Origin: Klebsormidium nitens
Lineage: Eukaryota > Plantae > Klebsormidiophyceae
Length of the DNA: 51,468 bases
Direction: 5' to 3'
Assembly: GCA_000708835.1 (NCBI GenBank)
Contig: DF237245.1
Coordinates: forward strand, 1-51,468
Shown: in pieces, positions 8,878 to 48,311 of the stretch
Numbering within the stretch: position 1 is the first letter of the stretch
Layout of the letters: the number at the start of each line of letters is the position of its first letter
Made by a program: the position numbers and the translations under genes
Notes under the pieces: model-generated
What the model was told of the DNA's origin: nothing
What the model saw: only the letters and a program-made list of their open reading frames with translations
The model's database searches: none

Positions 8878-11800
8878 CTACTGATAGACGAGGAACGTGT
8901 CAGTTTTGCAATATCTTGCTGCAAAGCGCCTGCCATCCGGGGTCGGTTGAGAAAAAGCACACGTAGATGGCTCCAAAACGCAGCCCGTGACGAAGGATGA
9001 CCTGCAGCACAGGGTCGGTCGTCAATGAAAATGTTCTTTTGGCGCATTAACTTTCGATGACGTTCTTGGAGCTGACAATAGCGCGTTTTCTCAGTACCAG
9101 CTATATCTGCCACGTGTCGTGTGCTCACTTTGAAGTGCCTCCTTAAACGGCGGTCTGCTATAGGAAGCGTTGAGGCTAGGATTTTACCGTTCTTTGATCT
9201 TGTTCGAAGCGGCTGTTTCAAGACTCAGAAAACAACCAAGAACCTCCGCACGCTGACATCCGAGCCGCTCATTGACCGTTCACTGCACCCTTGCTTCAGA
9301 CCGACAGAAAAGCAGGAGGCGATATGTGACGATCCTGTGCAATCAGCTGACCACTTCTGGAAATAACTTCGTCAGCGCCTCAATTGCAGGCAAACTCTCA
9401 TTGTAAACCAAGTTGCAAGGATTCCCGAGAGCCCCTCAGAACCTTCAGCCCGGATCGAGCCAGAACTAGGAGTGCGAGAAAGAAAGATACAATCCAGTCA
9501 GAGTGATACACACCTCATTGCATCCATAAGTGCCGTGGCGACCCCTTTTCGCCGCTCCGCCTTGCGCACCCAAATCGCCCGCACCCCGCACGTCGCTCGC
9601 ACCGCCTCCGTTCGGCACATGAGCGCCTGCGGCTCCCCCACTAACGTCAATTCCTTCACTTCGGACGTCCGCTTTTCGCTCTTCACCCGCTTCCTGCCGG
9701 ACGCTGACATCATCTGGGCGTATAGGGAGGGGCGCCCCTGGAGGGCTCTCGGGCCTTCCGACGGTTTTTTAGGCCGAGCTGATTGTTGGGACGGGAGGGG
9801 TTTTGGGGTTTCGAACTTCGATTCGGTGAATGGTTGAAGCCGCTCTGGTTGTCCGAGGGGCTCGGAAAGTTGTGGAGTTGGGGACGGGAGTTGACAGGGC
9901 TGCTGCAACGCATCCACCGCTGGGCATTCGTGTTGCGTCACAGCCACAGGGTATCTTTCAGGCGCGGCAGCTGATTGGCCGGAGCTCGGTCCCGTGCCTT
10001 GCCGCCCTCTTCGACTTGGACCCGTTTCCGGATCCACTCGCCGCTCCAAACATTCCCCCACGAAGTCCGGATGCCCATCGCCTACGCTACTAACGTCAAA
10101 AGAGTTTGATTCACCTGCGTGCTGTGCCGGTTTACCTGTACCTGTCGGCTGTCCAAACGCTGCTGTCTGTTCGTTCCCTCCATCTAGTTCTTCTTCCCGT
10201 GCTGCCCGCTCGCCAGATCCTATCTCTCCTTCCTTCCCGCCTTCCGCCCGGGCCGTACGACAATGAAATGCTCGCCCAATTTCAGCACCCGCGCGGTCCC
10301 CCTCTCGAGCGCTCCCGGGCTCACCTCTGTTCGTTACGTCAAAGACAGCAGTCGAATCGTCTCGTCCTTGCAAGTCTAAACCTGCCTCCGGAACCCCTGC
10401 TAAACTGTCCCCCCTTCGCCAATCCTCCACGAACCCCTCAACAGGTTCCTCTTCCAACGGCTCAGTCCGGGCCTTTCCCAAACCATCGTCCGCGGTAGCG
10501 ACTGCCCTTTCGACTGTACTCACACCTCCCTTCGCTGAAGTACCGACCTTCTCGACTGGCTGCACTCCTTTCTCGCTCGCTTCCCGGCCGTTGTGTCCCT
10601 CAATCGCCTCCGAAACCTCTCCGCCAACAGAGCCCTCTCTCAAAACGGATCCCGGTGCCCCCTGTGCCACCCCCGAGGCGGCCCCCGGCCCTGGAAAGAC
10701 CCGCCCCGTACTGACGAATGCGTCGCCCTTGCTGACGTCAGCTGCAGGTGTCGCTTCCAGCAGGGCGTCTCTCTGCTCTGCTTCTTGAGGGGGCCGCAGG
10801 AGTATGGTTTTGTAAGCTTGGGAGATGCTCTCGACCATGAGGCAGCCCACGACCTTGGAAGCAGCGATGTACAGATACACCTGGGGGGTTGGAAAGGAGT
10901 GAGAGTATGGGTACTAATTTTCCAACCCGGATTTGCATTCTCAAAGACACAGTGTGGCAATGTCCGTAGCCTAAAGAGAAGCGCTGAGGGGTGTGAAGCA
11001 CAACCAGTCTTCAAACGCCGCTTTACAGGAGGACTAGAGCTGCTCATCCAGGTTTAGTGAAGAATCTCATCTCGGCATTGCGACTCTGATTGGTGGCAAG
11101 TTGCTCCTCTATACCTGCAGTTTAATTGCTAAGCTGCTATCATCCGTTGAGTCACTGTTCTGCCGCTTGTTGTCTCCTAAGAATCTCTGGAAGGGTTGAC
11201 TTGCTGTCAACAAGAGAAGCTCATGAAGACACTGGATGCGCTGGGTTTGTGGCTGAAACTTCTGATTGGTCAAAAGTATCCGTCCAAGTTTTTTTAGTGC
11301 ATCTTGAGCTGGTGAACCAAGTGAAGGTAGACAATGAGTCTGCAGCAAAGATTTGAATGATATAGGGTGCAACCCTCATGCCGTGCGGAGTCCAAGAGTG
11401 GGGCTGCACGGGCCAAACATGATGTACCGCTTGGGTTTTCAGGGCTCACTTTGCAAGGTTTGCTCAGCAGCCACTCCTCTGCCAGTCCGAGGTCCGCCTC
11501 CATCACCGCCGCAACTTCTCTGACCTGCAAACTAATTCAGGTTAGGATGGATAACAAAATTCGGGTTTGCGTAATCAGCCAAACTCACACCTGTGCCACA
11601 GCAAAGTCAGTGTTTGAGTGCCTCGCAAGGTTTACTTGTACAGCAAGATGCTACATAGAAGAAAGGCCACAGCATCCAAAGCGAGAAAAAATAACCCTGG
11701 TTTGTGCGTCGGTGTGCAGTACTTGTGTTCAGAAAGAACGGCAAAGAATGCAGACCCGTGCCTTGCTCAAGGACCGGGTTAGAGCTGCATACGTGCCACC

Positions 11801-30738: not shown

Positions 30739-33700
30739 TCAGCTGATACCCCGCGCCCCAGGAACCGAACACAGGCCCGTGCAAGCCTTTTCGCATCTGC
30801 AGCGAGAAAGGACAATGTGCGCTTTCGTTTCTCGACCAATTTGCCGTTTTCTGATTAAAAAGACGAAGCCGCAGATTTCTTATTGTAAGCGAGACACTTA
30901 TTGAGTGGAGACGCTGACGAAAGGTTGCCTGCTGCCTATCCTCACATTCTAGACGAAGTGTGCGGATAATTGTGGGAGAAAGCTCCTCTTCACGGAACCT
31001 GATATTCGAATAATGTAGCTTCGAGAACCTGACAAAAGACGCTGTGATCAGACCTTACCCCCAGGGCGGCAACTCAAACAGGGACGCGTTGATCTCCTCT
31101 TCTGCGTACGTTTCCGTCCGGAAGGTGATCTTTTCATTCGGCTCCTGCACAGAGTAAGATCGTCGTTAGACATCTGCAGACATTCGTTCCCTTTTCGAGA
31201 AAGTGGAAGTTGTCGGAAAAATGCGTCAAGGCAAAGACTGCGCCTCAATTGAAGACGAACATGGTCCTCATATCTATCCTGTCCTGGCGAAACAACTTGA
31301 AGCAAATCAGAAAGTTCGCGGTCAATTACTTAAAGGCCGTTCCCTGAGCGGGTTGCTGTTGACGACGGCACTCCACTCAGGCCTCGACCGCTCAACCGCT
31401 CAACACTACAGGTTTCCCACCACTCTAATATGGCCATTCAAAGCCTCCTTTCGGGCCAGGAAATATACTTCGCACGGACGGGTCACAACAGCATAAGGCG
31501 GCCTGGAGCCTCCTCCGAAACATTGTTGCACGGTGCCCAATCAAAGGTGCAAGATCCGTACCCGTTGTCTTCGGATGGCTATCCTTCGGTTATGCAGAAC
31601 TTGCGATCTGTCTTTGCTCACCATGTAAATCTGGAGCGGGACGCCGTCTAGCGTCTCCCAAAAATAGTTGTTTTGAAGGCCGGCCTGCTTCCTGCACAAG
31701 CAAGAAGGCTCTCTGAAGGCCGGGTAGTCGAGCAAGTACGAAAGCACGCACCTCTTATATCTATTGAAGTGGGCGTTGCAAGCGCGCTTGCAATGGCGAT
31801 CGGACGGCTCGGATCTCCGCGATACGAGACGGCGAGTGCCGTCCTCGCTTTTGATTGGTCAAAAGAGCGACGCCGGGATGCCGCTCCGTCAAACCCCTAC
31901 GCCCTTTAAGGTCGCCATTCTAAACTTCAACAGAAGAAGCGAAACTCTGAGAAGGATACTCATCGGAGCCGGACCCTGGAAGCTTTTGTTCGTCCGACCG
32001 GTTCTAGATTGTATCTCCAGAGAGGAGGGACTTCTTGAAAAACAACGCCTTGACCGCAAGTGCCCCATTTTAATCAAGAGGTTTCTTTGCTACAGACGCA
32101 GCAAAACCATTTCTAGTTTAGCCTTTCAAAGCCTTCAGCCTCCTCCGAGTTCGAGGCTCGTCAATAACGCAAAGTAATGCAAGGCACCATGCAATCAGCA
32201 CCAAACCGGTGCTATCATAATGGAACGGCTGCCAACTCGTCATTTGGGACCAGCTTATTGCGCGCGTTATCAGAGAAAGAAGCCTACTTCCCCTCAAAGC
32301 AATCCCTTCATAGGCTTTTGATACTCCAAATGGAGACCTCTCTCTCCACGTCGTCCCAGCCCACGGAAAGGAAGGCTCCTTGAACTATTTTCAGGACGCT
32401 TTCGAGTTCAGAGTTCCGGACTCTTGAGTGTTTGCACAGCTTTCGAGATCCGAGGTTGGGTGGTTCAAAGACACCCTCACCATTTATTGCACATTTGGCC
32501 TTCGACCTCCTCCTGTCCCAGATATTGCGCACCATGCAGCCAATCCCGGCGGAGGATGCCGCACCCCGCCTCCGCTGAACAGCAGGAGCAGCAGTACTGC
32601 GCGAAGAGAGGCGCCTCGTGAGCTGACAGTCTGCTCGCAAGGGACTTCCCCGAAGAACTTTTATTTCGAAACAGGGGCAAAAGGGATTCGAAATCAGGAA
32701 AAGAAGGGGACAGTCAGAATGAGCATAACACGCTGGTGAAGGGGAAAGCCCAGACAGCATAACATCAGTGCAAAGCCCACATTGGCAAGGAACCATGGAT
32801 GCGATGATTGGGGGCCCTCCCCTGTAGATGTACAGACCTGAAGGTGCAGAACCTTAGAGGATGTACACTCGACAGCAAGATCCCGGAACGCCAGTGTGAA
32901 GGTCAAGTGAAACACTCGAACTAAGAGATTAAAAAGGCGTAGCTTTGAACATGCAAAAGGCATCATAACAAGATATGAATGAGAATTAGGTTCAACAGGC
33001 GTGTGGGTGTGGACGTCATGCAGACATTATCTGTTGACCTGTTAGAGAGGAGGTTTTTTGCTGTTCGACGGAGTGTCATGAACCCACCTTATGCTCCGGG
33101 AAAAAAATGTACCTCATTCCATCGACAACCAGTTGTGTACAGGCCGTATTCCGCAGTGGGTAGATCGTGCTGCAAAGAAAATCACCTTCAGAAGCACGCA
33201 GAGGCATCATCAAGTTCATGGAGGTATCTACAAAAGCACGAAGAGGATGAGCATGATAACACTGTTACACACAGATCATTCGCACCAGGGCAGGCAACAT
33301 TAAAAGTATTAGGCCTTCCCCTCATGTACTTCGACCATCAAAACCGAACTGGCCTCAACCTTGATTGGCGAACTGGCTCACTCCGGAATGAAAAGGCTGA
33401 GACATAGATGTACAATTCCACCGAGAACTCATACTTCTTCTTCAGGCAATGCTCAGCCATACCCCGGAAAACATTTTAGCAGTGAACAGGGTTTTGACGG
33501 AAGAAGAGAAAGACATGGAAGCTTACCCACAATACCTATTCCCCTTCCCATCAACCCTGTCAGTCCTAGAGCGGTTGTGCGCAGCGTCATAGTACATCTT
33601 GCCCGTTGTGGTGATTGAGAAGAAGTACCAAGCTGCCTGCACACCGAGCACCACGACGAACAGATCTCACCGAACCATATTGTCATGTGCACATCAGGCA

Positions 33701-34418
33701 AAATGGTGTTCTTCTATGGTAGGGCACATGCCTCTTTCAAGGCGCCTTATAAACTTGTCCGTAAGTTGCGACTCACCGATCATGGAATCCACGTGGTTGG
33801 GACCATCTCATGATACTGTAAAAAGTTCAGCAGAGGGCCAAGATTATGTAAGGCTTAGAAGGGGCACCTTATGTAAGTTGTCAAACGTTGTCATTGAATT
33901 GCAAAAACAAGATTCTATGTTAAACAGGAGAAAGGGCCAATTTGGGCAAAAGATGAGAATAGTAGGAATAGTAACCAAGCAGCCAGATATCAAACAACAG
34001 CTGGAAATCCTTTTATAGAAATCTACATCAATCTGGCTGCTGATGGAAATTGCACCAACTCACATCCACGGCACAAGGGCTGACCGCAAATGAAGTATGC
34101 CACCAGGCAATCTAGAAAGAGGTTATGAAACGAAGGTGCACAGTTGTCAGGCCGAAATGCAGTCAGTCACTCAAATCGTCCCAAAGCACAATCCAGGGGG
34201 CTGGTATCAACAGTACTTAGAAAACTGAACTGGAGTCAATGTCCTTATCCAGTCAGGAAGACTCCCAGCCGGATTCTCACCTCATGAAACTCCACCTGAA
34301 AGTTTGCCGGCCATTCAGGAGGAAAGAGTGGTGTGGGGCCCAGCTGGCCAACACAACACACTACCTGCAGCAGGAGGAGAAGCACTACCACCGCCATCGG
34401 CGCCAGCACAGCATTCAT
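30739..34418 (-). CDS. Secreted cysteine-rich protein, ependymin-related (EPDR/LolA-fold)-like, 7 exons, 219 aa
   Basis: complement(join(30739-30796,31059-31144,31622-31691,32481-32596,33088-33169,33527-33636,34281-34418)) = 660 nt, all GT-AG, phases consistent. Protein: signal peptide MNAVLAPMAVVVLLLLLQVVCCVG, PPEWPANFQVEF, GKMYYDAAHNRSRTDR, RYCG, YCCSCCSAEAGCGILRRDWLHGAQYLG.EEVEG.MCNKW, FELPPWGCEKAC. The gene model is strong; the family label is from motif recall. Confidence 0.85.
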
Positions 34419-34942
34419 TTTCGCACGCAGAAATGGGACATGGAAGTGAACTCTTGTCAGGACTCAAAGGTCTTTGGACCAGCAGCCAGCCCGCAGCATT
34501 GAAGATGAAGCCCCCATCTCTTGCTGCTTTTACGTAAAGTGCAGAAGCCTTCTTGCAGTGATTAGAGCGAGACTCCAGAAGGCTTGACTTCTTGAAGTTG
34601 AATCGAAGACATGAGCCTTGATGAGGGCAACATTTTGTTAAAGACTGACATTGACAGTGGACACACAGTTGGCATACACGAAAGAAAGCCCTTTGCCAAG
34701 GGCCTATGATGTGTCGCCAATAGAATTTATGAGGAAGTTTAACACTACCTACACAGGTCTTATCGGATACCAAGAAGCCGATTCAGAGTGTCATTGAAAG
34801 GCTTTGTCCTCCGATAAACGAGCCACATATGGAGTTCCAGAAGTCTGGTTTTTGCTCCGTATGCTCTTGCCCGCCGACATGACTTCCTCTCCTCTGAGGA
34901 CTCACTCTGACGAAGAGCCATTGCATTGGCGCACAAGCAGCC

Positions 34943-35155
34943 ATGTCTGCCCTCTTTGATTTCCAGTCCTTCCTGACCGTGGTCCTGCTCTTCATCTGCA
35001 CCTGTACCTACCTGAAGCTTAACTTTCCCAAGCTGTTGGAGGAGAAGACGGGATTCAGGGGTTTCTTTTGGAAGGCTGCACGGATTGGCGAGCGGCTGAG
35101 CCCTTGGATGGCTGCCAGCTGCCTTGTCATGGGCACATACCTGCTTCTCTGGTGA
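34943..35155 (+). CDS. KISH: Protein kish (TMEM167/DUF1242), intronless, 70 aa
   Basis: Single [28 protein letters not shown]...[28 protein letters not shown], matching the characteristic kish consensus (MSALFNF.S.L.V.LL.ICTCTY; [11 protein letters not shown]). Confidence 0.96.
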
Positions 35156-35241
35156 TTGGCGTGCATGGTCAGGAGCTGCGGGGACTCAGGGCGCACGGTT
35201 TGCTAAAGGGTGGTGCAGAAGATAGGAAAGAGGCATGAGCC

Positions 35242-38200
35242 ATGGATGCAACCGAGCTCAAGCGTTTGAAAGAAGAGTAAGCTGCCTACTCCAGATACTG
35301 TGTTCGTCTTATTCATTTACTTCTCTAGTGAAGAATTGGAATCTAAGAATGCCGCTCCATAGAATGTACATTTGAGGTTTATGCAGGCCCCTCTGTGCCG
35401 CGCCGGGGACTTGAAGTTACACTGAGATGCCACAAGTCAAAGTGCTCTTCCAGACACAGGATTCGCAAAACTCGACTTGATTATGCCAGTCAAGCTGAGT
35501 GCGCATGGGCTTCACGAGTTAAGAAGATCAAGCTCCCAAGCTTGTTGTCTTGTTTCGTGCCTTGTTGATGGGCCTTCCAAGGACCAAATGAGCCGCTGTT
35601 TGTGTTGTCTTGTTTGAACACATTGAACTGATTGAACAAGCTTCCTAAGTGCAGAGGGGTGGTGCTCTTGTACGTTTGCAGAATAACCCAAGAATCGGTG
35701 TTGCATGTAGAACTTGTGTTCGGAGTGGGCTGTTCGAAGCTTGTTTGGTTCAGGGTGTCTCTCTTTGTTGCAGGTTTGTGAGCAATCTCGAAGGCACCAC
35801 CATGCTCGAGATCTCAAGCGTGATGGGGCTGACACCGGTAAGTGGACTTATTGACTTCTTGCGTGACTTCAAATGTTCAGGAAGAAGTCTCTGTCAGCCA
35901 AGTTGGAGAATCGTGCTTGTGATCACTCCCCCTGTGGAGCAAACAACCAGGCCAGACAATTATGAAAGCATCTGCGGGAGTTGATGGTTCTGTTTTGTGG
36001 AAAGGTCAAGGAAATAATGCATCCACCCATTTTGAGAGTACATATCTTTCTCAAAGCTTTGCTTTGTCAAGGCTTTGTCGCTTTCTTTGCCTAGTGAAAG
36101 GCTGTTTAAGCAAGTTTGTTCCCCCCTACAATAGAGTACCCTCTAAGCAGACCTGTTGCAGGTGGCTGTCTTCTTCCGACTGGTGCTTGCCGCTTTCCTG
36201 GACCAGAGTAAGCTTCACCTGGCTTCTCCTGTTGATTCAAAGCAGTGCAAACAAAGGATCCTTTCTTTTCAGACCCATTGCCCTTCATGGCCGTCTCATG
36301 TTAACTTAGTGCTACTCTATACATGAAGGAAGAGTTAGCTGCTGCTCGTACACCAAGCTCAGACGTTCTTGTTCGAAGATACTGTGTGGTTACTAAAGGC
36401 TTGAATAAGGATATGTATCATGGAAACGAAGCTCACTAAGAGCATCTACCTTGCAGCTCAAGGAACAAAGAGAAGCCGTACGGGCAAACACCGCGATTCG
36501 ACGAAGGCTGCAGCCTCATCTCAGTCCACGCTCCTGGATTTTCTTGTTATCGTGATGCCCACTCTCTACTGCATGACTGTAAGTCAAGTCACTTCTTGCT
36601 CTGACTGCCAGCATCTCTAAGTCCTCTGCCAGTTGCTGCTTTCCAGTACCAGATACACTCAAGCACTGCTAAAATATACCAGCCTTCGTAAGCTTTGACG
36701 GTGCTTCACATCGCCTGCTTCGAGCTGTGTCGAATGATCAGTGTAGATATACAGGCTTGTGCGTTACGTTAGGCTTCTGACGTGCCTACATTGGACTGCG
36801 GCCGCAATCTGGAGGTCGGTTGAATTAGTTGTTAATGTCAGGAAGCAACAGTCGGGCATTACGGGATCTGCTCTTATTGAAGCGGTGATGTCATCTTAAT
36901 ATGCAGTGAGGCAGATGGCCAGATGTCTTACTCCACCCGAAAGGTTCAGATGTACGTGATTCAGGTCAGCCAGGCTTGGCTTTTGAAATTGTGCCTGCCC
37001 TCAAGACACGTCTTCCAACAGCCTGCCTTCCTGAATACTGTCTTTTTCTTGGTTGCAGCATCCAGAAGCCGTCTGGCCCTCCATTCTCTTCTTCTCCGTG
37101 GCATCCGCCTTTCTGGTCCTCATAGCCAAGAGGTAAGTTCTGCTATCCCCTCGCTTGAACAGTGTTATTGTGCTGTGTTCAGCTTGCAGAGCCGGTGCAG
37201 AGAATTCTTTGAATGCGTGCCAGATGCGCGCCAATCTGCAACACGCCCTGTCGGTGGATCATAGTCTGCAAGTGCCATTTTTCTTGCAGGGGAACAAGTC
37301 TCACATATGCAAACAATCAATTGCTTCGGTCCTTAGCTTCAGGATTCGGGTCCTAAAAGGTTGAGGACGCAAACTCAATATGGCTTCTAAAGATCAGACT
37401 AGCGCACTTCTGGCCGCTTTGAGGCCGTGTGCGGGGGACTTATATCCTCTTTGGCACGAGAGTTTTGCATTGGCTGGATACGTTTAGTCCGAGTCCTTAC
37501 GAGCTCGAGGCAGAATTGAAACCCTATATCGACTTTCCGTTTGTTTGTTTTTTGCCTCTCTATGGAGGTGACCATCATTCGAGCGTTCGTGTCCTTTCCA
37601 CGCATCCTAGACCAGGGCCAAACCGGTTAAGTATGCTGATTCAATATTCCTCTTGCAGGCAGTGGGCGTCTGACATCTTATGCTTTCCCTGCCCCTCAAG
37701 ACATGTCCTAGCGGGTATCGCCTCCCCCAAGAAGCCGTTCCTTTCGAAGTACCGAGCAAGCATGGTCAGTTCTCCAAATATTTGAAATCCGATGTCCAGT
37801 CAGAACACGAATTTGCGCCGCGGGAGGTAATAGATTTGAACAGGCCAGAGACTCTGAGCACTTCCAGGCCGTCTGGGTTTTGACCACTGTTCATCCTGAA
37901 AGAACCAAGTCGAAGCGCTGACTGTTAGCATCGGGTTCCATGGCTACCATGTCTGAACCGTTATGAATCTGTCTGGTGGAAAGGTCTGTGTCATTCCAAC
38001 GTCTCATGATGGTCTCGCGCGTTTGAGTCATTCATTCTGAGAGATGTCCTCGAGTTTTGGTTCAAATGGGATTGAATGCCATTGCCGGTGGTTTTACAGG
38101 GATCAAGTACAGTGTTGGTCATGATATTTCTGTGCGGTCAGGTATTGTTGCCAACACGGTCGCTTCCTGTGCATTCCTTCTCTAGTGTTTGTCGCTTGAG

Positions 38201-41200
38201 TTTACCTCAATGAAGCGGAGTGTCAGGGATCCGTTATACCCCAGTTCCCAACACACCTCCGTCAGCAGTTTCCACCGAGATTACCAGGGTATTTACCCGT
38301 GGCTCTCGGTGCAGATGCTTCTCACTGTTATCGCAATCCTGGCGGTCGACTTCGATATCTTTCCAAGGCGGTTTGGCAAGGCGGAGACTTTCGGGACCGG
38401 CCTGGTAAGTAAATTTTCTGCACGCTCAAGAGGAGTCCTAGAACGGTTCTGTTCCGTACGTTAAAAAACCAAACAATTCTGAAGCGAATCTCGCCCTCTT
38501 ATTCTCTTCTAGTTGGTTTCTACGGCCACCCTTACGCTGACATTGGCCGGAGTTCGTAGCTATGAGGGGCTTGCTTTCTTCTCCCCAGCTTGAACCCACC
38601 TCGTCCTCCTATTGTTGTAAGTTCCAATTTTGCAGTCTCTTCTTTCTTGTACCTTGCAAGCATTGGAGTCGTATCTTGCTTCCTCTCAGTCTCTGATCTT
38701 GAGAGTGGAGTCGGTCAAACCTTGTAAAGAGTGCCAATACAGATGGTCGTGAAGAAGTCTGCTTCGCTATTTCTACTCGGCATGTCTCGATCACGTGTCA
38801 AGAAGAGACCAATTCCTTTGGGTGTCTAGGCATACCTACATGACCTGGTCAAATGTCTATCCGTACTTTCCTCTCCCTGGAGGCTGGACTATTTGAGGAC
38901 AGCAATCCCTCTCTCGACGATCTTTCTGTGTAGCGCAAGTTCGCTCAGAAGTACTGTTCTTTCCAATTCCAGTTGAGTCAGTATTGGATGGTATAACGCC
39001 AATTGAACCAGGCGCAGTTGCTCTGTTGGACGCCTTTGCTTTTGGTTGGTTGAAGGGATGTCGAGGACGGCTACTCCCTGGCCTATGCGGTTCCTGGCCA
39101 GGTCGAGGAGTCTAAGCTGCGGATGACATGCCTCCCATTCTTAAGCCTCAAAGACAAGATTCCAAATGCCGAAAGCTTTGGCATGCTTCTGACGTGCAGT
39201 CCGTCGTTGCTAGATGCTGTGTAAGTGCTCGACCGGTCCGGACTCTTTCTATATCAGAGCACGTGGTCCGATCGTTACATTGAAAACGAAGTCAAGCTGG
39301 GGCTTCTCGAAGCTTTGAGTAATTTCAGCTTCACGAAGTCTAAGGAAGACCTTTTGTCTGCTGGCGTTTGCTCGATCCACTCCTTTCGTCAGGTATCAGG
39401 CAAGCTCTTCTGGCACCTGTCTTTGATACACAGCTTGCATACATTCCGCCGACGAGGCAAGCGCTGAATGTGGCTTCTCCGGGAGCGTCCTTTCTGATGC
39501 TGGATAAATCTTTCCTGTCAGTTTGTTCGTTTTGGCCTTCACCAAGAGTGGCTGAGAGCAGTCTATGAATGAGCCTACTTGCGTCCAGTTCGGTCCGAAG
39601 TGTCGGCTCGTGATCTGGTTGACGGAATCGTGAAAACATCGTCCCGCTTGCTCGCATCCTGTAACTCGTCAATGCTCAGCTGACCTCCGTCAGGTGTTCA
39701 TTTTCAGCACTGATATGATCTGCTTGGCCAAAGCATGGCCACTTACAGTCTTCTGGATGTTACTTAAGACGATCTTGAATGCATGAACGAATCTACCTTG
39801 CATCTTGTGGAGAGATGGTGTGGGTGACTGACCATTGGCTAGTCCTCAGCAATCGCGTATTCTGCCCGGAGTACGTTGCGGTAATGACGATGCCCGTGTG
39901 GCTGATTTGAAATTGGTCACAGCCCAAGCTCTGCAGCGGATGCCGCGGTTGCACTATACTTTCCCCTCGACATAGTCTGGTCAAACGTCGTTATTGCGAA
40001 CTGGAACGTGGACCACTTGAGGGTCAGTTGGTTTGCTGCTCGAATGCAATTTGGAAGCTTCCTTTCGTGACGCCGAAGCTGACAGCTTGCGATATGATCG
40101 CGTCCAATAGAGTGAGACGAAGCGAAAAAATCAGTTCAGCTTCGCCATGATACGAACTGCTCTTCGCTCTCAACATCTCCGCACAGTGGTGCTGATCACT
40201 TGCGACTTCTCGAGAGCCCTTGCCAAGCTTCATGTGCCCCAGTGTTTACAGTACTAGATGTTGTCAGGGAAGGTTAGCGAGCTCGGATGCCTCGGCTTGG
40301 ACTCGTTCAGCTGGGCGATCTGGTGTGGGTGCGCAGCGTCGTTGTACTGTGCTTTACCAGTTAGAGAAAGGCTTGTTGTTTTCGAATTCTTGCAAAAGAT
40401 TGCTTGCTTCCGGACAAACGTCATCACAAGACTGCCAATTTGGAGGGAGCCAAAAGCTGCTCTGTTTGAGCGGTCATCCGTCAAGCTACTGAAAGCCGTT
40501 GGTTTCTGTGAAAAGCTGCAGCCGCCATTTGGAGTTCTCGATCTTTGTAGTATTCAGGTCCTCGTTTCTTCTGATTGACGATAGCAGTCTGGGGATCCGA
40601 TTGAGTTTGTCTCATGCGAAGTATTGCCGGTTCGATGTTCTAGCCCAATCCGTACGATGGCAGCCTGCACTCATTGTAGCTGCGGCATGTAGCTCTTGGT
40701 TTTTACCGAAGCCCGTTGTCGATAATAATCAGGCAATCAGGACTTTATGGTATCACAATACAAAGGCTGTTAGTCCAGAACCCGCATAATAATGGAATTC
40801 ACAGCCAGATCATTCGAAGACTGTGTCAAAGATGAGTCGCACTGTTGGTCTGCGTAGTATGCTCCACCCCGCGCATAACGGTTTCCACCAGGCTCTGATG
40901 ACACAGGTAGTGCCTTTGTCAACCTGATGACATTGAAGGCTTTATGAACATATGTCCCCGGATTCACCTTCTTAAATCTGGCAGTCCCTTAAGATTCTGA
41001 GCTTATGTACGACCACTCAGCTCCGAGGCGGGAGTCTTTCATGTGTTGCGGTAGTGCTATCTCAAGATGTCATATTGGTATGATTTTCTGCTTCGTGTGT
41101 TGATGTCAGCCTTCACGTACTCTCAGAAACACTCTACACGCTTGAGTCTCCCTGCAATCGTCGAAACCGGTATCTGCTAAGCGAGCTGATTGCTGACGTC

Positions 41201-44200
41201 TCCATCTGCTGCAGATGGACGTCGGCGTGGGTTCGTTTGTGGTGGCCAACGGCGTTGTATCGCGAGAGGCGCGCGGTGTGCCCACGTGAGCCTGCTGCCT
41301 ATCTAATCAAAAGGTTTCGTATTTCTGCCTTTCCTTTTCCAGATGACGTCCCTGATGAGGGCAGGTCGTTATCGCTTTCCCTATCCTGAGAGTTGTGCGT
41401 CTGGAAGCGTTCCTTCGATGCCAGCAGCCCGCTACTTACGGTCGAGGAGTTTTCTAAGCCTTAAAACCGTTCGGCAGCCAACACCCTCCCTAGCCGCGCA
41501 GCGCCCTCCAAAGCTGAGCAAGTGATGGCTTGCCGGTTCATACAAGATCGATAGTACTTTTCAGCTTTTGTCCTTTGTTTCTTCGTCAAGAGCGTGTCCT
41601 CGTCCTTGTTCTCGTTGCACATGCGATAGTACCTTGCCTCTGGCAACTTGCTTCCGCTCAATCATATCAAATGCCTTTAAGTTCAGCTATTACCTACTCT
41701 CGTAAGAAAACCCAGCAGAACCCCGAAGATGGCGTGCGCAAAGCCTCCTCTGGGCGGAACCGTTCAGAGCTTAACCTTGACTTCTTTGGCTCTGCACTAC
41801 TCTTACACAGGCCCCCACAACCCTGCCTGCACTAGGCGTCTCCCCTGTCGCTCTCTCGAGTCCAGGTCAATCGGACCTCTTACTTTCAGCGTGCTCGTTT
41901 TTCAACCCGCAGCTCGTTTGACGTCAGAACCATGCGAACCAAATACTGGGTCCCTCGAAAGTGGTCTGCACCAGGATGCAGGCTGGTCAAAATAAGCATA
42001 CCAAATTGCAATGTGTCTCGCAGAATCTCCAGGGGTGGCCTACAGAAGACAACCCCCCTGCTGCTGCTCAGCTTTACGCGCCTGGCTGTCATGCGTGTGC
42101 CCTCGATCAACTTAAGCAAGTTCCTTAGTCAGAGTCAGGTCAGTCAAACCCTGTGATATGTCCTACAGGCCCCCTAGGAGTCGCCTACAGAAGACGCCCC
42201 CCTGCTTGTGCTCAGCTTTGCGCCGCCGGCTGCCATGCGCACTCCAAGTTCAATCAAGTCAAGGAGATTGGTGGTCAGACATAAGTCGAGCAAACCGTGC
42301 AATTTGTCTCGCAGGCCCCAAGGGAGTCGCCTACAAAAGACTTCCCCCGGCTACTGCTCGGCTTTGTGCGGTTGCTGCCACACGCATTCCCTGAATCATA
42401 GTAAGCGAGTTTCGTCATCAAATCAAATCAACTGAACCCTTTAATTTTCCGCACAGGTCCTCCTGGGGTGGTCTACGCCGGACGTCCCCGTAGCTGCTGC
42501 TCGGCTTCGCCAGCCTGGCTGCCGTGCCCGTTCCCCCGTCAATCAAGTCAAGCAAGTTTCTGGTCAGAAGAAAGTTAACCAAACCCTGCACTTTTTCCAC
42601 AGGCCCCCCAGGGGTGGTCTGCGCCGGACGTCCCCCTTACTGCTGCTCGGCTTTGCGCGACTGGCCGCCACCAAGGCGGCGGGGTACCAGGAGCACGTGG
42701 GCGAGTACGGCACGCACTGGAACTTCTTCTTCACGCTCGCGGCCGTGGAGCTGCTGACGTCAGCGGCGCCGATAGGCCCCGGACGGGCGGGCCTGGTCGG
42801 AGCGGTGGTGCTGGCAGGTGGGTCTTTGCTGGGTGGGTGTGGGATTGGGTTAGGAAATGGGTTAGTTAATTATCTGCCTTTCAAAGAAGTTGAGTGCGTC
42901 GAATTACTGGCTGCACATCGGATAAGGTTAATGAATGTAAGATCATGGGCAACAGCAAGTGGTTTTGAAGCTCGTCACGAGATAGAAGAGTCTGATTCTG
43001 AAAACTTCACAAAATGCTAGGGATCATCAGTGAAGTTTTCACTCCATAGGTTCACTGTGTCTGGAAGTCCTACGGGGCATCGCTCCAGGCTCTTATTTTT
43101 CGTTTTTTTCTGTAGAGATTGGAAGCATTAGGGGCCTACAGTAAGAGCAAGGCTCGGGAGTCGACAAAGGCATTGCTGTTCCAATTACTGGCAAACGCTA
43201 ACGTTCCCCGCCAGCATCTTTGACCAAGCAGGGAAGCTAATGGCTCCCGAGCAACCATTTGCCGCCTTGATGCAAGAAAACAAAGTCACAAATTACAAAA
43301 TCGGGTCACTTTTGCTGTGTTCGGCCACGCACAGGTCCGTCAACGCTCTTTACTTCGAGAAGGGAACTCGCAGAAGAGGCCCGCTAAAAGGAGCAGAGCT
43401 CTCGTTGCTGACGGAGCATCTTTTCGCAGGGTATCAGGCGGTGCTTTCCAAGAGCAACCTGAGCGAGGTGCTCATGTCCAACCACAGGGGGGCCTCTTTG
43501 CTGAGCCAGAACAAGGAGGGGGTGGCCAGCGCCTTCGGTGAGTGACGTAAGCGTCACAGCACTCTTGCAAACTCTTCTGTGGGTCGATCTTTTGTACGCT
43601 TCTGCAGCACCCGGCTTGTTTCTGAATTTGAATGGTTTCTCCGTCCGCAAAAGTTGCATGTATTACATGATGACGTCTGGTCTTCTCAAGAGCGCTTTGG
43701 CTGTGCTCTTTGCATCTCTATCAACGCAGCAACAGCGGTACTCGCTATCAACTCCTGGTTAGAGGCTTCCAGACAACTATGTCAGATTCTTTTACTGTCT
43801 GCTATCATTCTCTTGCTTTTTCTCCTTTTTAGGTTACTGGGCGCTGTACCTTCTGAGCGTCCAGCTCGGCCGATTCTTTGCCACGTCAGCAGCACATGCC
43901 GCACAAGAACTCGCCCCGGGGAAGACGGGGGAATCTCGGGAGAGCGACCTGCAAGCGGGGCGGCACTGGTGGCGATTCGCCGGAAAGGTCTGGGGGCTGC
44001 AGCTGGCGCTGTGGTGAGTAACAGAATCGCTGGAAGGGACGACTCTAGCTTACCCAATCTGGGCTCTCGTAGATGACGTGAAGATCATCTGGGCTCGTAT
44101 ATGACGTAAAGATCATCATTTCTTGTAAGGCTCGTTTGAGTTTGCGGAAGCCAGCCACGACGTCTCAAGAGCGTGTCAGGATGTAGAGTCTCGAGTTTGA

Positions 44201-46211
44201 GCAGTCCGCGTCTCCTAGGATGATCCCCACACCTTAGGCTGGCCATCCTCTGTGGGGCATCTCTTTTGGTTGGACGGTCGCCCATCGGGCCAGGTCGGGC
44301 CCTCAGTTTTCGTAGCTTCTGGCGACGAAGAGCCTCTACTTTGAGCTGCAGCACAGATTGAGAGACTACGCTCGCTTGATTTCAAGCCACTTGTTTTCTC
44401 TAGGATTGAAACAGTAGCACAATTGCACGATTGAGGATGCTTACTCCTTGCGAGTCACCGTGGATTTCATTGAGGCTCGTTCCTTTCTTCAGGGTGTGTA
44501 CCAATCTGGCGGATGCCTACATCGAGCGGGTTTCTCGACGATCGGTAAGAAACACTTTTTCTTTCACTCCACTCCGTCCCTTTCTGGTTGGCGCAAGTTC
44601 AGCAACTGTTGAGTCTTATCTGCCGGTCACTTCAGCTTTCCAACGATTCTCTCGTTTGAACAATCCAGTCCTCTCTCTAGAGCGGAAAATGAATGCTTTG
44701 AAGGCCAACCAGTCGTGCTACCCCATCGTTGGCTCGTCGCATTCTCGCCAGAATCTGGCGAACTCTGCTTTGAAGGACAGTCTGGGCTCATGGGTGGACT
44801 AAGCAAGCATCGAGAAAGCCGTTCTCGATGCGTCCGAGGATGCAAAGCCTTAAACGGAAATTGGAGACCGGGAAGTCACGAGCGTCGCAAATACATCATA
44901 CTACGTTCTGACTGCTTCCAGCTGCCCTTCTGCAGTGCAATCTGGCGTACGTGCTGTGGATGCTGGCCTTCAACCTCCAGGTACAGTGTGTATCCCATCT
45001 GTCATTGCGCTCGTATACAAATCTGCTGTGGGCTTAAAATCGCTCATGGCGGTCCTTGCTGGAACTATGATCCTTGCATTCCAAGTCTGTTGTGCTGCCC
45101 AGAAGTACAATTTCTGAGTTTGGAAGCGCCATGAGTTGCTCAAGCTGACTTTGAAGATTCGGCGGCTAGAATTATTGTCGGACGACCGTCTCGCTGAAAA
45201 AGCCCCGTTCTTGTTGTCGAAGTCGAGTGTCCGTAACTTGACTTGCCCATTATCCTGAATACACCACCTCTGATTTATCCAAGACCAGAACCTTATGCTG
45301 TACCAAAGTTTGGGTCCAAGCAGCAACATCGCATACTGCCTCTGCATCGGTACCTGCCCACTGATCCGCCGACCCTTACGCTGGTTTTTCCTCCACTTCG
45401 GCACATGCACCGTGACCTGTACGTTCTAAAGACCATCAAACCGTGTACAGAAAAGCTCTCGTGCCCGTGCAGGCAATCTCCATGTTTGTGACCTTCGACC
45501 TGCTCCTCCCGCCCCGGTCGTACTCCCTCCTGGACGCCATCGACTATAACCTGCTCCCGATCTTTTTGCTGGTAAGATTCCCCCTCTCTTCATCTTTCGC
45601 TTGGCTCTTTAGACTCCGTTTCCCGTCTGTTCCGCCCGCAATCACCGGTTTGTGCGTCGGTCCCGGTCTTCTTCAAATAGAAAGGGTCGTTTGGCGGCTT
45701 CTTCTATAGTCCGCGATTTTCTTCGCGGCCTTTTGGGGCTCCTGCCGCTCCCGTGTTGCATTGTGCTTCTTTTAGCCCCCGCTTTCTGACGTCAGCGTCC
45801 CCAAATTTCCTCGTTCGACGGGTGCTTCGCCTATCCACCTAGACCGCCATGGCTTTTGTTGGAGCCCTCAGCCGCCTGTTGCAGGTCTTGACAGTCACTC
45901 AGAAGTCGAACCTCTCATTTCTTCTCAATTGGTTGGCCCGGTTTTTGCGTCTTTGGTTCGGCGACCATTTCGTGGACTCTGCTGCCTTTCCGTCGCCTTT
46001 AACACGTCCGCCACGCCTGCGTGATTCGTAATTGACACTTTTCGCCCACTTTTTCCAGGGCAATCTTCTCACGGGCCTGGTCAACATGAGCATTGACACT
46101 CTGCACACGCCCCGTGCCCATGCTTTCATCATTCTGACGTTGTACATAGGGGTAGTCTCTTGGACAGCATGGGTATTGCACCGGACGCGAGTACGCTTGG
46201 CATTTTGGTGA
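35242..46211 (+). CDS. PIGW: GPI-anchor inositol acyltransferase PIG-W/GWT1, 15 exons, 486 aa
   Basis: join(35242-35276,35774-35837,36162-36207,36457-36578,37059-37132,37659-37764,38315-38404,41215-41285,42603-42817,43430-43537,43833-44013,44493-44544,44936-44980,45473-45571,46059-46211) = 1461 nt, phases consistent. Motifs: [105 protein letters not shown]. Confidence 0.95.
39063..39942 (-). pseudogene. Possible decayed leucine-rich-repeat coding remnant, antisense inside PIG-W intron 7
   Basis: Minus-strand peptides [21 protein letters not shown] (39063-39125) and [19 protein letters not shown] (39886-39942) resemble RI-like LRR units LxxLxLxxNxI. Frames are interrupted by stops. Confidence 0.3.
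42015..42690 (+). repeat. Five-unit tandem array (about 145-nt period) of the PIG-W exon-9 acceptor and first ~70 nt; only the last unit is coding
   Basis: CAG acceptors end at 42023, 42168, 42314, 42456 and 42602. Each is followed by a version of gcccccc.ggggtggtct.cgccggacgtccccc...ctgctgctcggcttt, and the spacers share tcaatcaagtcaagcaag...ggtcaga...caaaccctg. A fainter sixth copy starts at 41811. Confidence 0.92.
44057..44116. repeat. Imperfect tandem duplication (about 29 nt x2) in PIG-W intron 11
   Basis: atctgggctctcgtagatgacgtgaagatc then atctgggctcgtatatgacgtaaagatc. Confidence 0.85.
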
Positions 46212-48311
46212 GGGCATGGCCAGAACGTTGGTCACCTCCGCTTAACGAAATTCTTGTCATACGCACAAATGGAGGTCTTTCAGGTGGAACCGTGGTTCGT
46301 ATGGATCCAGATCTGGATTCTTGCTTGCGTGGATACAGCTTCCAATAGCCCAACTCTGTATCCTGCTTGTCGGACCAGATCACCTCAATTTCGAGGAGTG
46401 CTCCCTTGCCACATTTCTGCCAAGCAAGCGGATGTCGATGAAGTGCGGTAGACATGTGTGACTCAGCCTGGGACGCTGCGGTTACATCCGAAATTCTTTC
46501 TTGCCGGCTGACGACATATAACAACATTCACGTCGATCGAAATGTCGTTGCAAGGATGAAAATGGTCTGGCCTGCTTGCTTGATGTGATATCCATCTGCT
46601 GTAAAATGTGCGACATATTCAAAGACTGCTGCGCTTGCTTTCTAAAGCTTCCGAACTTTTCTGTATCCATTGACATAAGGCTGACTGAGTCACAAGCACG
46701 TCAAAAGATTATCTGGATCTTTTTCGTTCGCCGCGAAGAGTAGTGCAAAGAACTCTTTTCGCATTACTGTGTGAGCGCCTCATCAGGCGCCAGGACGAGT
46801 ACGTTTTTGTCACAAGCGGATAGTTTTAATCAGCCAGCTACAGGTGCTTACACGAAGTGTTTGCTTTCGGCTGCTGCAAGCCTTGTTTCGACTCCAGTTG
46901 ACGCCTTGAGCAGGCTACTTTATTGTGTTGCAAACGACGCACATCGGCTTCGTTTAAAAAGTCTTCTTTCTTCCATGCGGAAACAACCTGGATCACGTAT
47001 GCTGCCTCGCCTGCCTTCTCAGTTCTGAAACGTTTCGTTCGTTCACTTTTAGACGGAGCGAGGCCGTCCTGTCGTGTGTGCGACTCACTCTATCGTCAAA
47101 CCATGGTCAATTGATTGCATGCCCTTCACGCGTGGAGGCTGTCTCGTCTTGAATTCCAAGACCTGCCCATGCTTTCAGGAGAGATTCCTCTGGCAGCTCT
47201 GCTTGCCACAAGTCACATCACATCACAGCTGCAGTCTCTGCTGGCATCTTAAAGGGACATCTCGAGCCCCATCGCTATATCGAGGGGGCGTCCCCGCAAA
47301 AAATGGCATTTTCTGTCGTCTCATCTGCTGCCGGTTCGCACCTCCCTCTTTTCTGCAGCTCTTTTGTCTTGTTGTTCTGGCACGGATTGAATGCATTCTT
47401 GTCAAGATAGGAGGTGGCAATGAAACGATTCTGATTGAACTTCTCTTGAGCTCACACAAGAGGCTTGACCCTCCGATGCCATGCCCTCTGCAAACCGGAC
47501 CCCTGATATCAACAGACGGACCATCTCACTCGCAACGAACGTCGAATTGGCTCAGGTCCTGAAGTTTGTTGACCCGCCTTCTGGTTTGCAAATGCACCCT
47601 TTTCTCAAATTCCTATTTCAAATTTCAGAAGTAACAAATGTCCTCCGCCACATAGTTCAAGGTCTGGAGAAACATTTGTGTCATCACGTCAGCTCTGAGC
47701 CGAGTTCCATCTGCAAGTCCTTTGTTGAACGTGGTCGACGCCCCTTGTGGCCGTCACCTCCTCGGGCAGCTCTCGTTCGTCGCAATTGCTCGTTATGACA
47801 ATCTGTTGCTCAGGCCCTTTTGCAGCTTTGAGCCGTGTTGTTGCGTGCCGTTACCATTTTCATGCTGGCTGCTAAAGCAGGTTGGTGCTCCAGAAACATG
47901 GTTCCACAATCTGTGAAAATCCCTGTGGCCAATCATCGGCAAATTTGAGCTGGTTCTAGGACCTCTAAGTGGTGTCTTACAGGCCTTGTGGCAATGAGAA
48001 GCCCATTCCTTGAGCGTACACCGAGCTCAAACCCGTGTGGATGCGAGAAATGAAGCCGCACTATTCACTATGTTTGATGATTATCTTGGACAGCGGATGT
48101 GTGCTTGAAGCCGCGTGTCTTTGCAGATTCTTGTCTTTTAAGTTCGTTCAACTGATTGTTCTGATTGCTCAGTACTGTTCCTTCTTTTGCGAGGGGCTCA
48201 GGTATCGTTTCCAGTGATCTATTCAGAGTTGGGTCTTTCTGGAAGTAGCCGGCGCATCAGACCGTCAGGGGTTATTTGGTACATTTGGGCGCGCTTTGTT
48301 TTCAGTTGAGG

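Follow-up and report, generated by a model that had tools for sequence, protein, structure and literature searches.

Two Conserved Open Reading Frames Lie 86 nt Apart on One Strand

In a 51,468-nt stretch of DNA from Klebsormidium nitens (contig DF237245.1; the whole stretch is called the window below), an intronless open reading frame (ORF) for the small secretory-pathway factor Kish is followed on the plus strand by PIG-W/GWT1, a multi-exon gene for a glycosylphosphatidylinositol (GPI)-anchor enzyme of the endoplasmic reticulum (ER). Spliced contigs from four RNA sequencing runs in four studies strongly suggest that one mRNA carries both ORFs, as a preliminary description of this DNA had proposed. 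The layout given in that description was verified at every coordinate: Kish is intronless and ends at 35155, PIG-W exon 1 begins at 35242 on the same strand, and 86 nt separate them. The locus hence presents two conserved, non-overlapping, same-strand ORFs with a short spacer (Kish at 34943-35155, PIG-W from 35242), which is the layout of a bicistronic locus. Its parts are as follows.

34943-35155, plus strand: Kish, ORF 1 (TMEM167 family, DUF1242), 70 aa, intronless, TGA included; supported by Pfam, identity and dN/dS
35156-35241, plus strand: inter-ORF spacer, 86 nt, transcribed and kept in the mature RNA; one contig per run in four runs
35165-35206, plus strand: short ORF of 13 codons in the spacer; last sense codon ends at 35203, TAA at 35204-35206
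35235-35237, plus strand: ATG overlapping the PIG-W start (ATGAGCCATGG) in another frame; G at -3, A at +4
35242-35276, plus strand: PIG-W/GWT1 exon 1, start of ORF 2; 35 nt (11 codons and 2 nt), donor GTAAGC
35774-35837, plus strand: PIG-W exon 2, 21 residues; GT..AG joint 35276>35774 in four runs, weak GWT1 match
36162-36207, plus strand: PIG-W exon 3; contig joints in four runs, borders checked
36457-36578, plus strand: PIG-W exon 4; contig joints in four runs, borders checked
37059-37132, plus strand: PIG-W exon 5; contig joints in four runs, borders checked
37659-37764, plus strand: PIG-W exon 6; contig joints in four runs, borders checked
38315-38404, plus strand: PIG-W exon 7 with the GWT1 core motif; contig joints, profile E=2e-14
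41215-41286, plus strand: 5' part of the next PIG-W exon; contig continuation after 38404, TGCAG acceptor
42613-42813, plus strand: PIG-W exon region with a conserved block; Pfam GWT1 E=4.8e-21, profile positions 183-248

Kish runs from the ATG at 34943 to the TGA at 35153-35155 as a single unbroken ORF of 70 codons (213 nt). In a profile search against Pfam DUF1242 (PF06842) it scored 60.1 bits (E=2e-16) where the curated cutoff is 25, and its length agrees with the ~70 aa typical of the Kish/TMEM167 family (DUF1242, IPR009653), to which it thus belongs. Every residue class of the family is conserved and the ORF is intact. The closest protein in a collection of 5.8 billion proteins is the metagenomic Kish P0001 (89% identity); identity to named Kish proteins is 67-89% overall and 76-77% to those of the streptophytes Spirogloea, Sphagnum and Closterium, similarities that would fit a streptophyte alga as host. 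Against the metagenomic locus L001, DNA identity is 78.6% with saturated synonymous sites and the ratio of nonsynonymous to synonymous substitution (dN/dS) is 0.03; Kish is under strong purifying selection. Introns are absent from Kish here and in L001, and present in Closterium (L002). The exact Kish protein is absent from the 5.8-billion-protein collection, where no match is labelled Klebsormidium, and an exact look-up in the assembly index returned no record of the Kish protein or of the truncated product of the contig that starts at 34975. Absence from the protein collection would be expected had annotation of the transcript been limited to its long ORF. One Kish cluster in the collection (P0033, with 84 members) bears the label "protein kish [Escherichia coli]" and comes from a 334-nt contig; this label is almost certainly the result of eukaryotic contamination of a bacterial assembly.

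PIG-W exons 1-7 total 537 nt, or 179 codons. Introns 1-6 are all of the GT..AG type (35277-35773, 35838-36161, 36208-36456, 36579-37058, 37133-37658, and 37765-38314). The in-frame splice of exon 1 to FVSNLEG, described earlier from the DNA, is found as a GT..AG joint in the contigs of all four runs; exon 2 opens at 35774 behind the acceptor TTGCAG|G, and a codon split as GA|G carries the reading frame on into FVSNLEGTT. This stretch of exon 2 aligns weakly to positions 8-27 of the GWT1 profile, so that the ATG at 35242 fits the N-terminus expected of the family. Further GWT1 (PF06423) matches lie at 38284-38404 (E=2e-14, profile positions 107-147) and 42613-42813 (E=4.8e-21, profile positions 183-248); the exon matches are colinear with the profile and include its core blocks, placing the product among the PIG-W/GWT1 inositol acyltransferases. 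From the size of the RNA contigs and the Pfam profile we estimate a protein of ~495 aa. Intron 7 (38405-41214) measures 2.8 kb, five to ten times the length of introns 1-6 (249-550 nt), and holds low-depth contigs (38917-39068 in run X2; 39142-39319 and 39570-39780 in run X14) that may be a nested element or a rarely retained piece.

The two start codons differ in context, as the preliminary description had it: the Kish ATG (gcagccATGt) has G at -3 and T at +4, and that of PIG-W (tgagccATGg) has G at both positions. Kish contains two further in-frame ATGs, at 35108 and 35129; the latter lies 8 codons before the Kish stop in a strong context, with G at -3 and at +4. Both spacer ATGs are also as first described, namely 35165, whose 13-codon ORF stops 35 nt before the PIG-W ATG, and 35235, which is out of frame. 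The spacer contains no AATAAA, ATTAAA or TGTAA motif. The spacer and its flanks have no excess of secondary structure over shuffled sequence (z=+1.36), and an element resembling an internal ribosome entry site (IRES) in the spacer was rejected on this ground. Likewise rejected was a Kish-PIG-W fusion protein made by read-through or splicing: the two ATGs are 299 nt apart, which puts the ORFs out of frame with each other, stops intervene, and the contigs show no such joint.

Spliced RNA Contigs Cross Both ORFs

The stretch 34800-35290 is present in 20 runs from 7 studies. Logan contigs of four runs (X1, X2, X6, and X14, from four studies with two organism labels) were mapped on 33900-39890. These runs are of RNA, since each has a contig from which six introns are missing, precisely at GT..AG borders. 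In each run a single contig of 1837-1940 nt is unbroken from 34975 (34982 in X1) to 35276, covering Kish codons 12-70, the stop, the entire spacer and PIG-W exon 1; from there it continues over six GT..AG joints through PIG-W exons 2-7 and farther. Beyond 38404, the contigs of all four runs continue with identical letters, which are placed at 41215 after the 2.8-kb intron.

The mean depth of the bin 35100-35299 equals the contribution of the main contig, to the decimal, in each run. Over 35100-35699 none of the four runs has a second contig, a poly(A) branch or an intron-retaining form. Within PIG-W intron 1, depth over 35300-35699 is 0 in all four, so that no Kish mRNA extends into that intron by an unspliced 3' untranslated region (UTR). 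Upstream of the main contig, a unitig spanning 34897/34905-35004 overlaps it by at most 30 nt (k-1), and the depths of the two are 68 vs 69 (X1) and 106 vs 129 (X2). Near-equal depth of a unitig that covers only Kish and a contig that is mostly PIG-W, in two unrelated studies, argues indirectly for one RNA species.

A Probable 5' End Upstream of Kish

Two features precede the Kish ATG.

34598-34896, no strand assigned: intergenic stretch of ~300 bp, probable bidirectional promoter; uncovered, TC-rich patch TTCCTCTCCTCT directly ahead of 34897
34897-34942, plus strand: 5' UTR, 38-46 nt; contig 5' ends at 34897 (X1) and 34905 (X2)

The 25 nt directly before 34905 in the X2 unitig are Illumina adapter, which we take to be the end of the TruSeq adapter; the X1 unitig has 25 unplaced letters before 34897. 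An adapter at the end of a unitig implies that many fragments end there, and we read this as an RNA 5' end upstream of Kish, probably a discrete one 38-46 nt before the Kish ATG. Depth is 0-1 over 34700-34899 and the contigs of the neighboring gene stop at 34591-34597, so that the uncovered 34598-34896 provides an internal contrast to the covered spacer. This stretch is probably a promoter region common to Kish and its divergent neighbor, a role suggested by its position. PIG-W itself has no promoter-sized gap before it, and the gap upstream of Kish amounts to 300 bp.

The neighbor (33606-34597, minus strand) is divergently oriented and strongly expressed, its depth in X2 reaching 1047. The first exon spans ~34281-34597, and an ATG at 34418 opens the signal-peptide-like MNAVLAPMAVVVLLLLLQ. 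The intron at 33637-34280 reads CT..AC on the plus strand, which places the gene on the minus strand; its use as a same-strand gene giving a yardstick for 3'-end spacing was rejected for the same reason.

The Pairing Is Not Widespread

Kish was compared across 87 loci, comprising seven from the contigs of five Kish homologues (P0001, P0004, P0044, P0051, and P0098) and 80 metagenome loci. No GWT1 was found in any of them by tblastn with all open frames of 35156-47500, and none of the 87 is shown to be a close relative; even the best, L001, is distant, given its saturated synonymous sites. The comparison therefore indicates that the pairing is not widespread and says nothing of sister species.

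Some of these loci have features of their own. In L001, a JGI metagenome contig, a GTAAGT consensus donor (within 10211-10240) lies 16 nt after the stop of the intronless Kish; this donor may serve an intron in the Kish 3' UTR or a splice that links Kish to some downstream gene, one other than PIG-W. Three loci from Logan runs of one project (SRR32539586-88; L005:204-2732, L006, and L007) have a 477-aa ORF with a weak PAP_fibrillin match ~880 nt downstream of Kish, on the same strand and contig. That arrangement could be another Kish co-transcript or compact genomic DNA.

Comparison With Known Bicistrons

Polycistronic nuclear mRNAs in chlorophytes, which the preliminary description invoked as precedent, are well established: hundreds of such loci have been reported (Gallaher 2021, PMC7896298), and experiments in Auxenochlorella have tested leaky scanning as the way in which bicistrons are translated (PMC11892635, PMC11291117). 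That precedent can be widened to CDC26-TTM3 in land plants and to Kish itself in Auxenochlorella bicistrons. Kish-PIG-W resembles the exclusively bicistronic chlorophyte loci of Chlamydomonas, Chromochloris and Auxenochlorella (Gallaher 2021, PMC7896298; Duenas 2025, PMC11892635) in having a short ORF 1 (213 nt; medians ~290 nt) and a long ORF 2, a short inter-ORF distance (86 nt; medians 40-183 nt) and a short 5' UTR, ORFs in different frames, each with a start and a stop of its own, and no IRES-like structure. Its ORF 2 has G at +4 where its ORF 1 does not, which may fit the pattern of a weak ORF 1 context in those bicistrons. It differs in its streptophyte host, in being known here from short-read assemblies, in a pair that was not found in other species (87 loci), and in a ratio of observed to expected upstream ATGs of ~1, compared with published medians of 0.43-0.49 in chlorophyte bicistrons.

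"Protein kish" (IPR009653) is listed twice among the bicistronic ORFs of Auxenochlorella protothecoides, at UTEX250_A03.05485/05490 and UTEX250_A12.36755/36760, with a GINS-complex ORF and a COA6-like ORF beside Kish (supplement, PMC11892635). The rows of that supplement look partly shifted, and the Kish ORF and its partners are not firmly assigned. Kish-PIG-W would share with these loci a two-ORF mRNA in which this small family forms one cistron, whereas the partners differ, GWT1/PIG-W being nowhere in the supplement.

On the streptophyte side, the CDC26-TTM3 bicistron is conserved in land plants and green algae, according to the citation of Lorenzo-Orts et al. (2019) in PMC11291117. It shares with Kish-PIG-W a streptophyte nuclear mRNA, a conserved ORF 1 of ~65-70 aa, an enzyme as ORF 2 and an expectation of nonsense-mediated decay (NMD); conversely, it extends over the whole green lineage while Kish-PIG-W is seen in this alga only, and the proteins are unrelated. 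Arabidopsis read-through polycistrons (PMC9768141) also place two same-strand neighbors of a streptophyte on one RNA. They are minor, suppressed by NMD and accompanied by monocistronic forms, in contrast to the present locus, where monocistronic forms were not detected and the joint form is the sole assembled one. A literature search found no report of a nuclear poly- or bicistronic mRNA in Klebsormidium, nor of Kish with PIG-W. Kish-PIG-W is probably a new, lineage-specific case of a known kind of bicistron.

Weighing the Explanations

We put the probability that Kish-PIG-W is a true bicistronic nuclear mRNA at roughly 0.65. The part of the earlier proposal that finds support is co-transcription, since spliced contigs span both ORFs in four runs with no rival contig over the spacer; a single molecule is not thereby proven, and several observations weigh against the bicistronic reading. 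Contigs are assemblies and not single molecules, and a contig over two genes does not prove one transcript. A de Bruijn assembler would give the same contig for two mRNAs, one of Kish whose 3' end falls within 35156-35276 and one of PIG-W that begins 31 nt or more before that 3' end; poly(A) tips are usually clipped in assembly. The assemblies break at 34975-35004, inside Kish, in four of four runs, which could reflect an additional 5' end or another transcript that shares this stretch; the 30-mer concerned recurs neither in the window nor in any fetched locus. In X14, 38 foreign letters, found neither in the window nor in the fetched loci, are joined at 34941, directly after AG. Together, the break and these letters hint at a second RNA sharing 34941-35004 (64 nt) or at an alternative first exon. 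The locus L003 was rejected as the cause of the break: Kish shares its first 23 residues, but the DNA is not identical. Translation adds further difficulties. Five ATGs precede the PIG-W start in 34897-35241 (34943, 35108, 35129, 35165, and 35235) against 4.8-5.0 expected by chance, so that upstream ATGs are not depleted, depletion being a trend of the class and no strict rule; the strong-context AUG at 35129 and the overlapping AUG at 35235 are among them. A 70-codon ORF before many exon junctions should draw NMD, the pairing is not conserved (0/87 Kish loci with GWT1 nearby), and translation of both proteins from the joint RNA is predicted from the ORFs alone.

Short-read assembly could have merged two tightly packed, overlapping monocistronic mRNAs, an account to which we give markedly less weight than to one transcript. 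Kish would then be polyadenylated within the spacer or PIG-W exon 1, and the PIG-W cap would lie inside Kish or the spacer, for example near 34975. The assembly break speaks for this, as the main contigs of all four runs begin right there without extra letters, and so does an AUG-rich leader ill suited to translation of PIG-W from an mRNA containing Kish. Contigs cannot phase molecules, and the poly(A) signals of this alga are evidently non-canonical, so that the absence of motifs from the spacer proves little. Nevertheless, the depths of 68 vs 69 and 106 vs 129 would match this closely only by coincidence if the genes were independent, and over 35100-35699 every run lacks a second contig, a poly(A) branch and an intron-retaining form. 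Even from 34975, a PIG-W mRNA would have four AUGs ahead of its own, so that the difficulty with translation would persist, and it is Kish, not PIG-W, that has an uncovered upstream region of promoter size (300 bp).

Less probable still, and in our view unlikely, is an RNA that is dicistronic in sequence but of which only one ORF matters. Kish could be a recent intronless retrocopy in the PIG-W leader that acts as a repressive upstream ORF (uORF), with the working Kish elsewhere; its lack of introns here, compared with their presence in Closterium, would agree with this, as would the apparent sharing of the 64 nt at 34941-35004 with RNA of other 5' sequence in X14, a hint of a second Kish-like transcript. 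Alternatively, the joint transcript could be a decay-prone read-through by-product, for which the NMD-suppressed polycistrons of Arabidopsis, (PMC9768141) offer a parallel; the pairing with PIG-W occurs at none of the 87 other Kish loci. Against a dispensable Kish stand its intact ORF, in which all residue classes of the family are conserved, and the lack of any other Klebsormidium Kish protein on record. The Kish of L001 is likewise intronless without PIG-W, which implies that the introns were lost before the pairing arose. Coverage of the contig is good in all four studies (depth 69-129), unlike that of a rare by-product, and the RNA has its 5' end ahead of Kish, giving a short leader of the normal kind.

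A Proposed Mechanism and Its Implications

Under the bicistronic reading, one RNA polymerase II transcript would start ~40 nt before the Kish ATG, from a promoter region common with the divergent neighbor, and would be spliced only downstream of Kish, leaving Kish (70 aa) first and PIG-W/GWT1 (an estimated ~495 aa) 86 nt on. With a fusion excluded and an IRES-like element unlikely, scanning-based mechanisms remain. Most scanning ribosomes would begin translation at the Kish AUG, with its G at -3 and lack of G at +4; the minority that get as far as 35242 would make PIG-W, an ER enzyme of low abundance. They could get there by leakage past the Kish AUG or by re-initiation after a short ORF, for which those at 35129 (8 codons) and 35165 (13 codons) are candidates. 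Kish would thereby act on PIG-W as a large coding uORF, and PIG-W output is probably low, since upstream AUGs are not depleted. The leaky scanning first proposed for this locus is thus upheld only in part: the Kish ATG does lack the +4 G, but five upstream ATGs where ~5 are expected set the leader apart from the chlorophyte bicistrons.

A broader hypothesis can be put forward tentatively, and we think it rather less likely to be right than not. Exclusively bicistronic mRNAs of the chlorophyte style may arise de novo in streptophyte algae too, with Kish-PIG-W a lineage-specific example formed when an intronless Kish landed in the PIG-W leader. Kish would be a recurrent passenger as ORF 1, a very small membrane protein that lands time and again on the mRNA of a longer partner, having other partners in Auxenochlorella, and PIG-W would be made without AUG depletion, which would imply re-initiation after short ORFs over plain leaky scanning. 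The pairing of a secretory-pathway factor with an ER GPI-anchor enzyme is also suggestive of a possible functional link.

A confirmed Kish-PIG-W mRNA would explain why Kish is absent from the protein sets of this alga, and would teach for annotation that allowing one coding sequence per transcript loses small upstream ORFs. Polycistrons in streptophytes are documented essentially for one ancient pair (CDC26-TTM3) and for read-through RNAs suppressed by NMD. If the bicistronic reading is true, Kish-PIG-W would be a case that breaks the rule of few upstream AUGs, testing how general leaky scanning is, and would mean that new bicistrons form on the streptophyte side too, near the base of the land-plant lineage.

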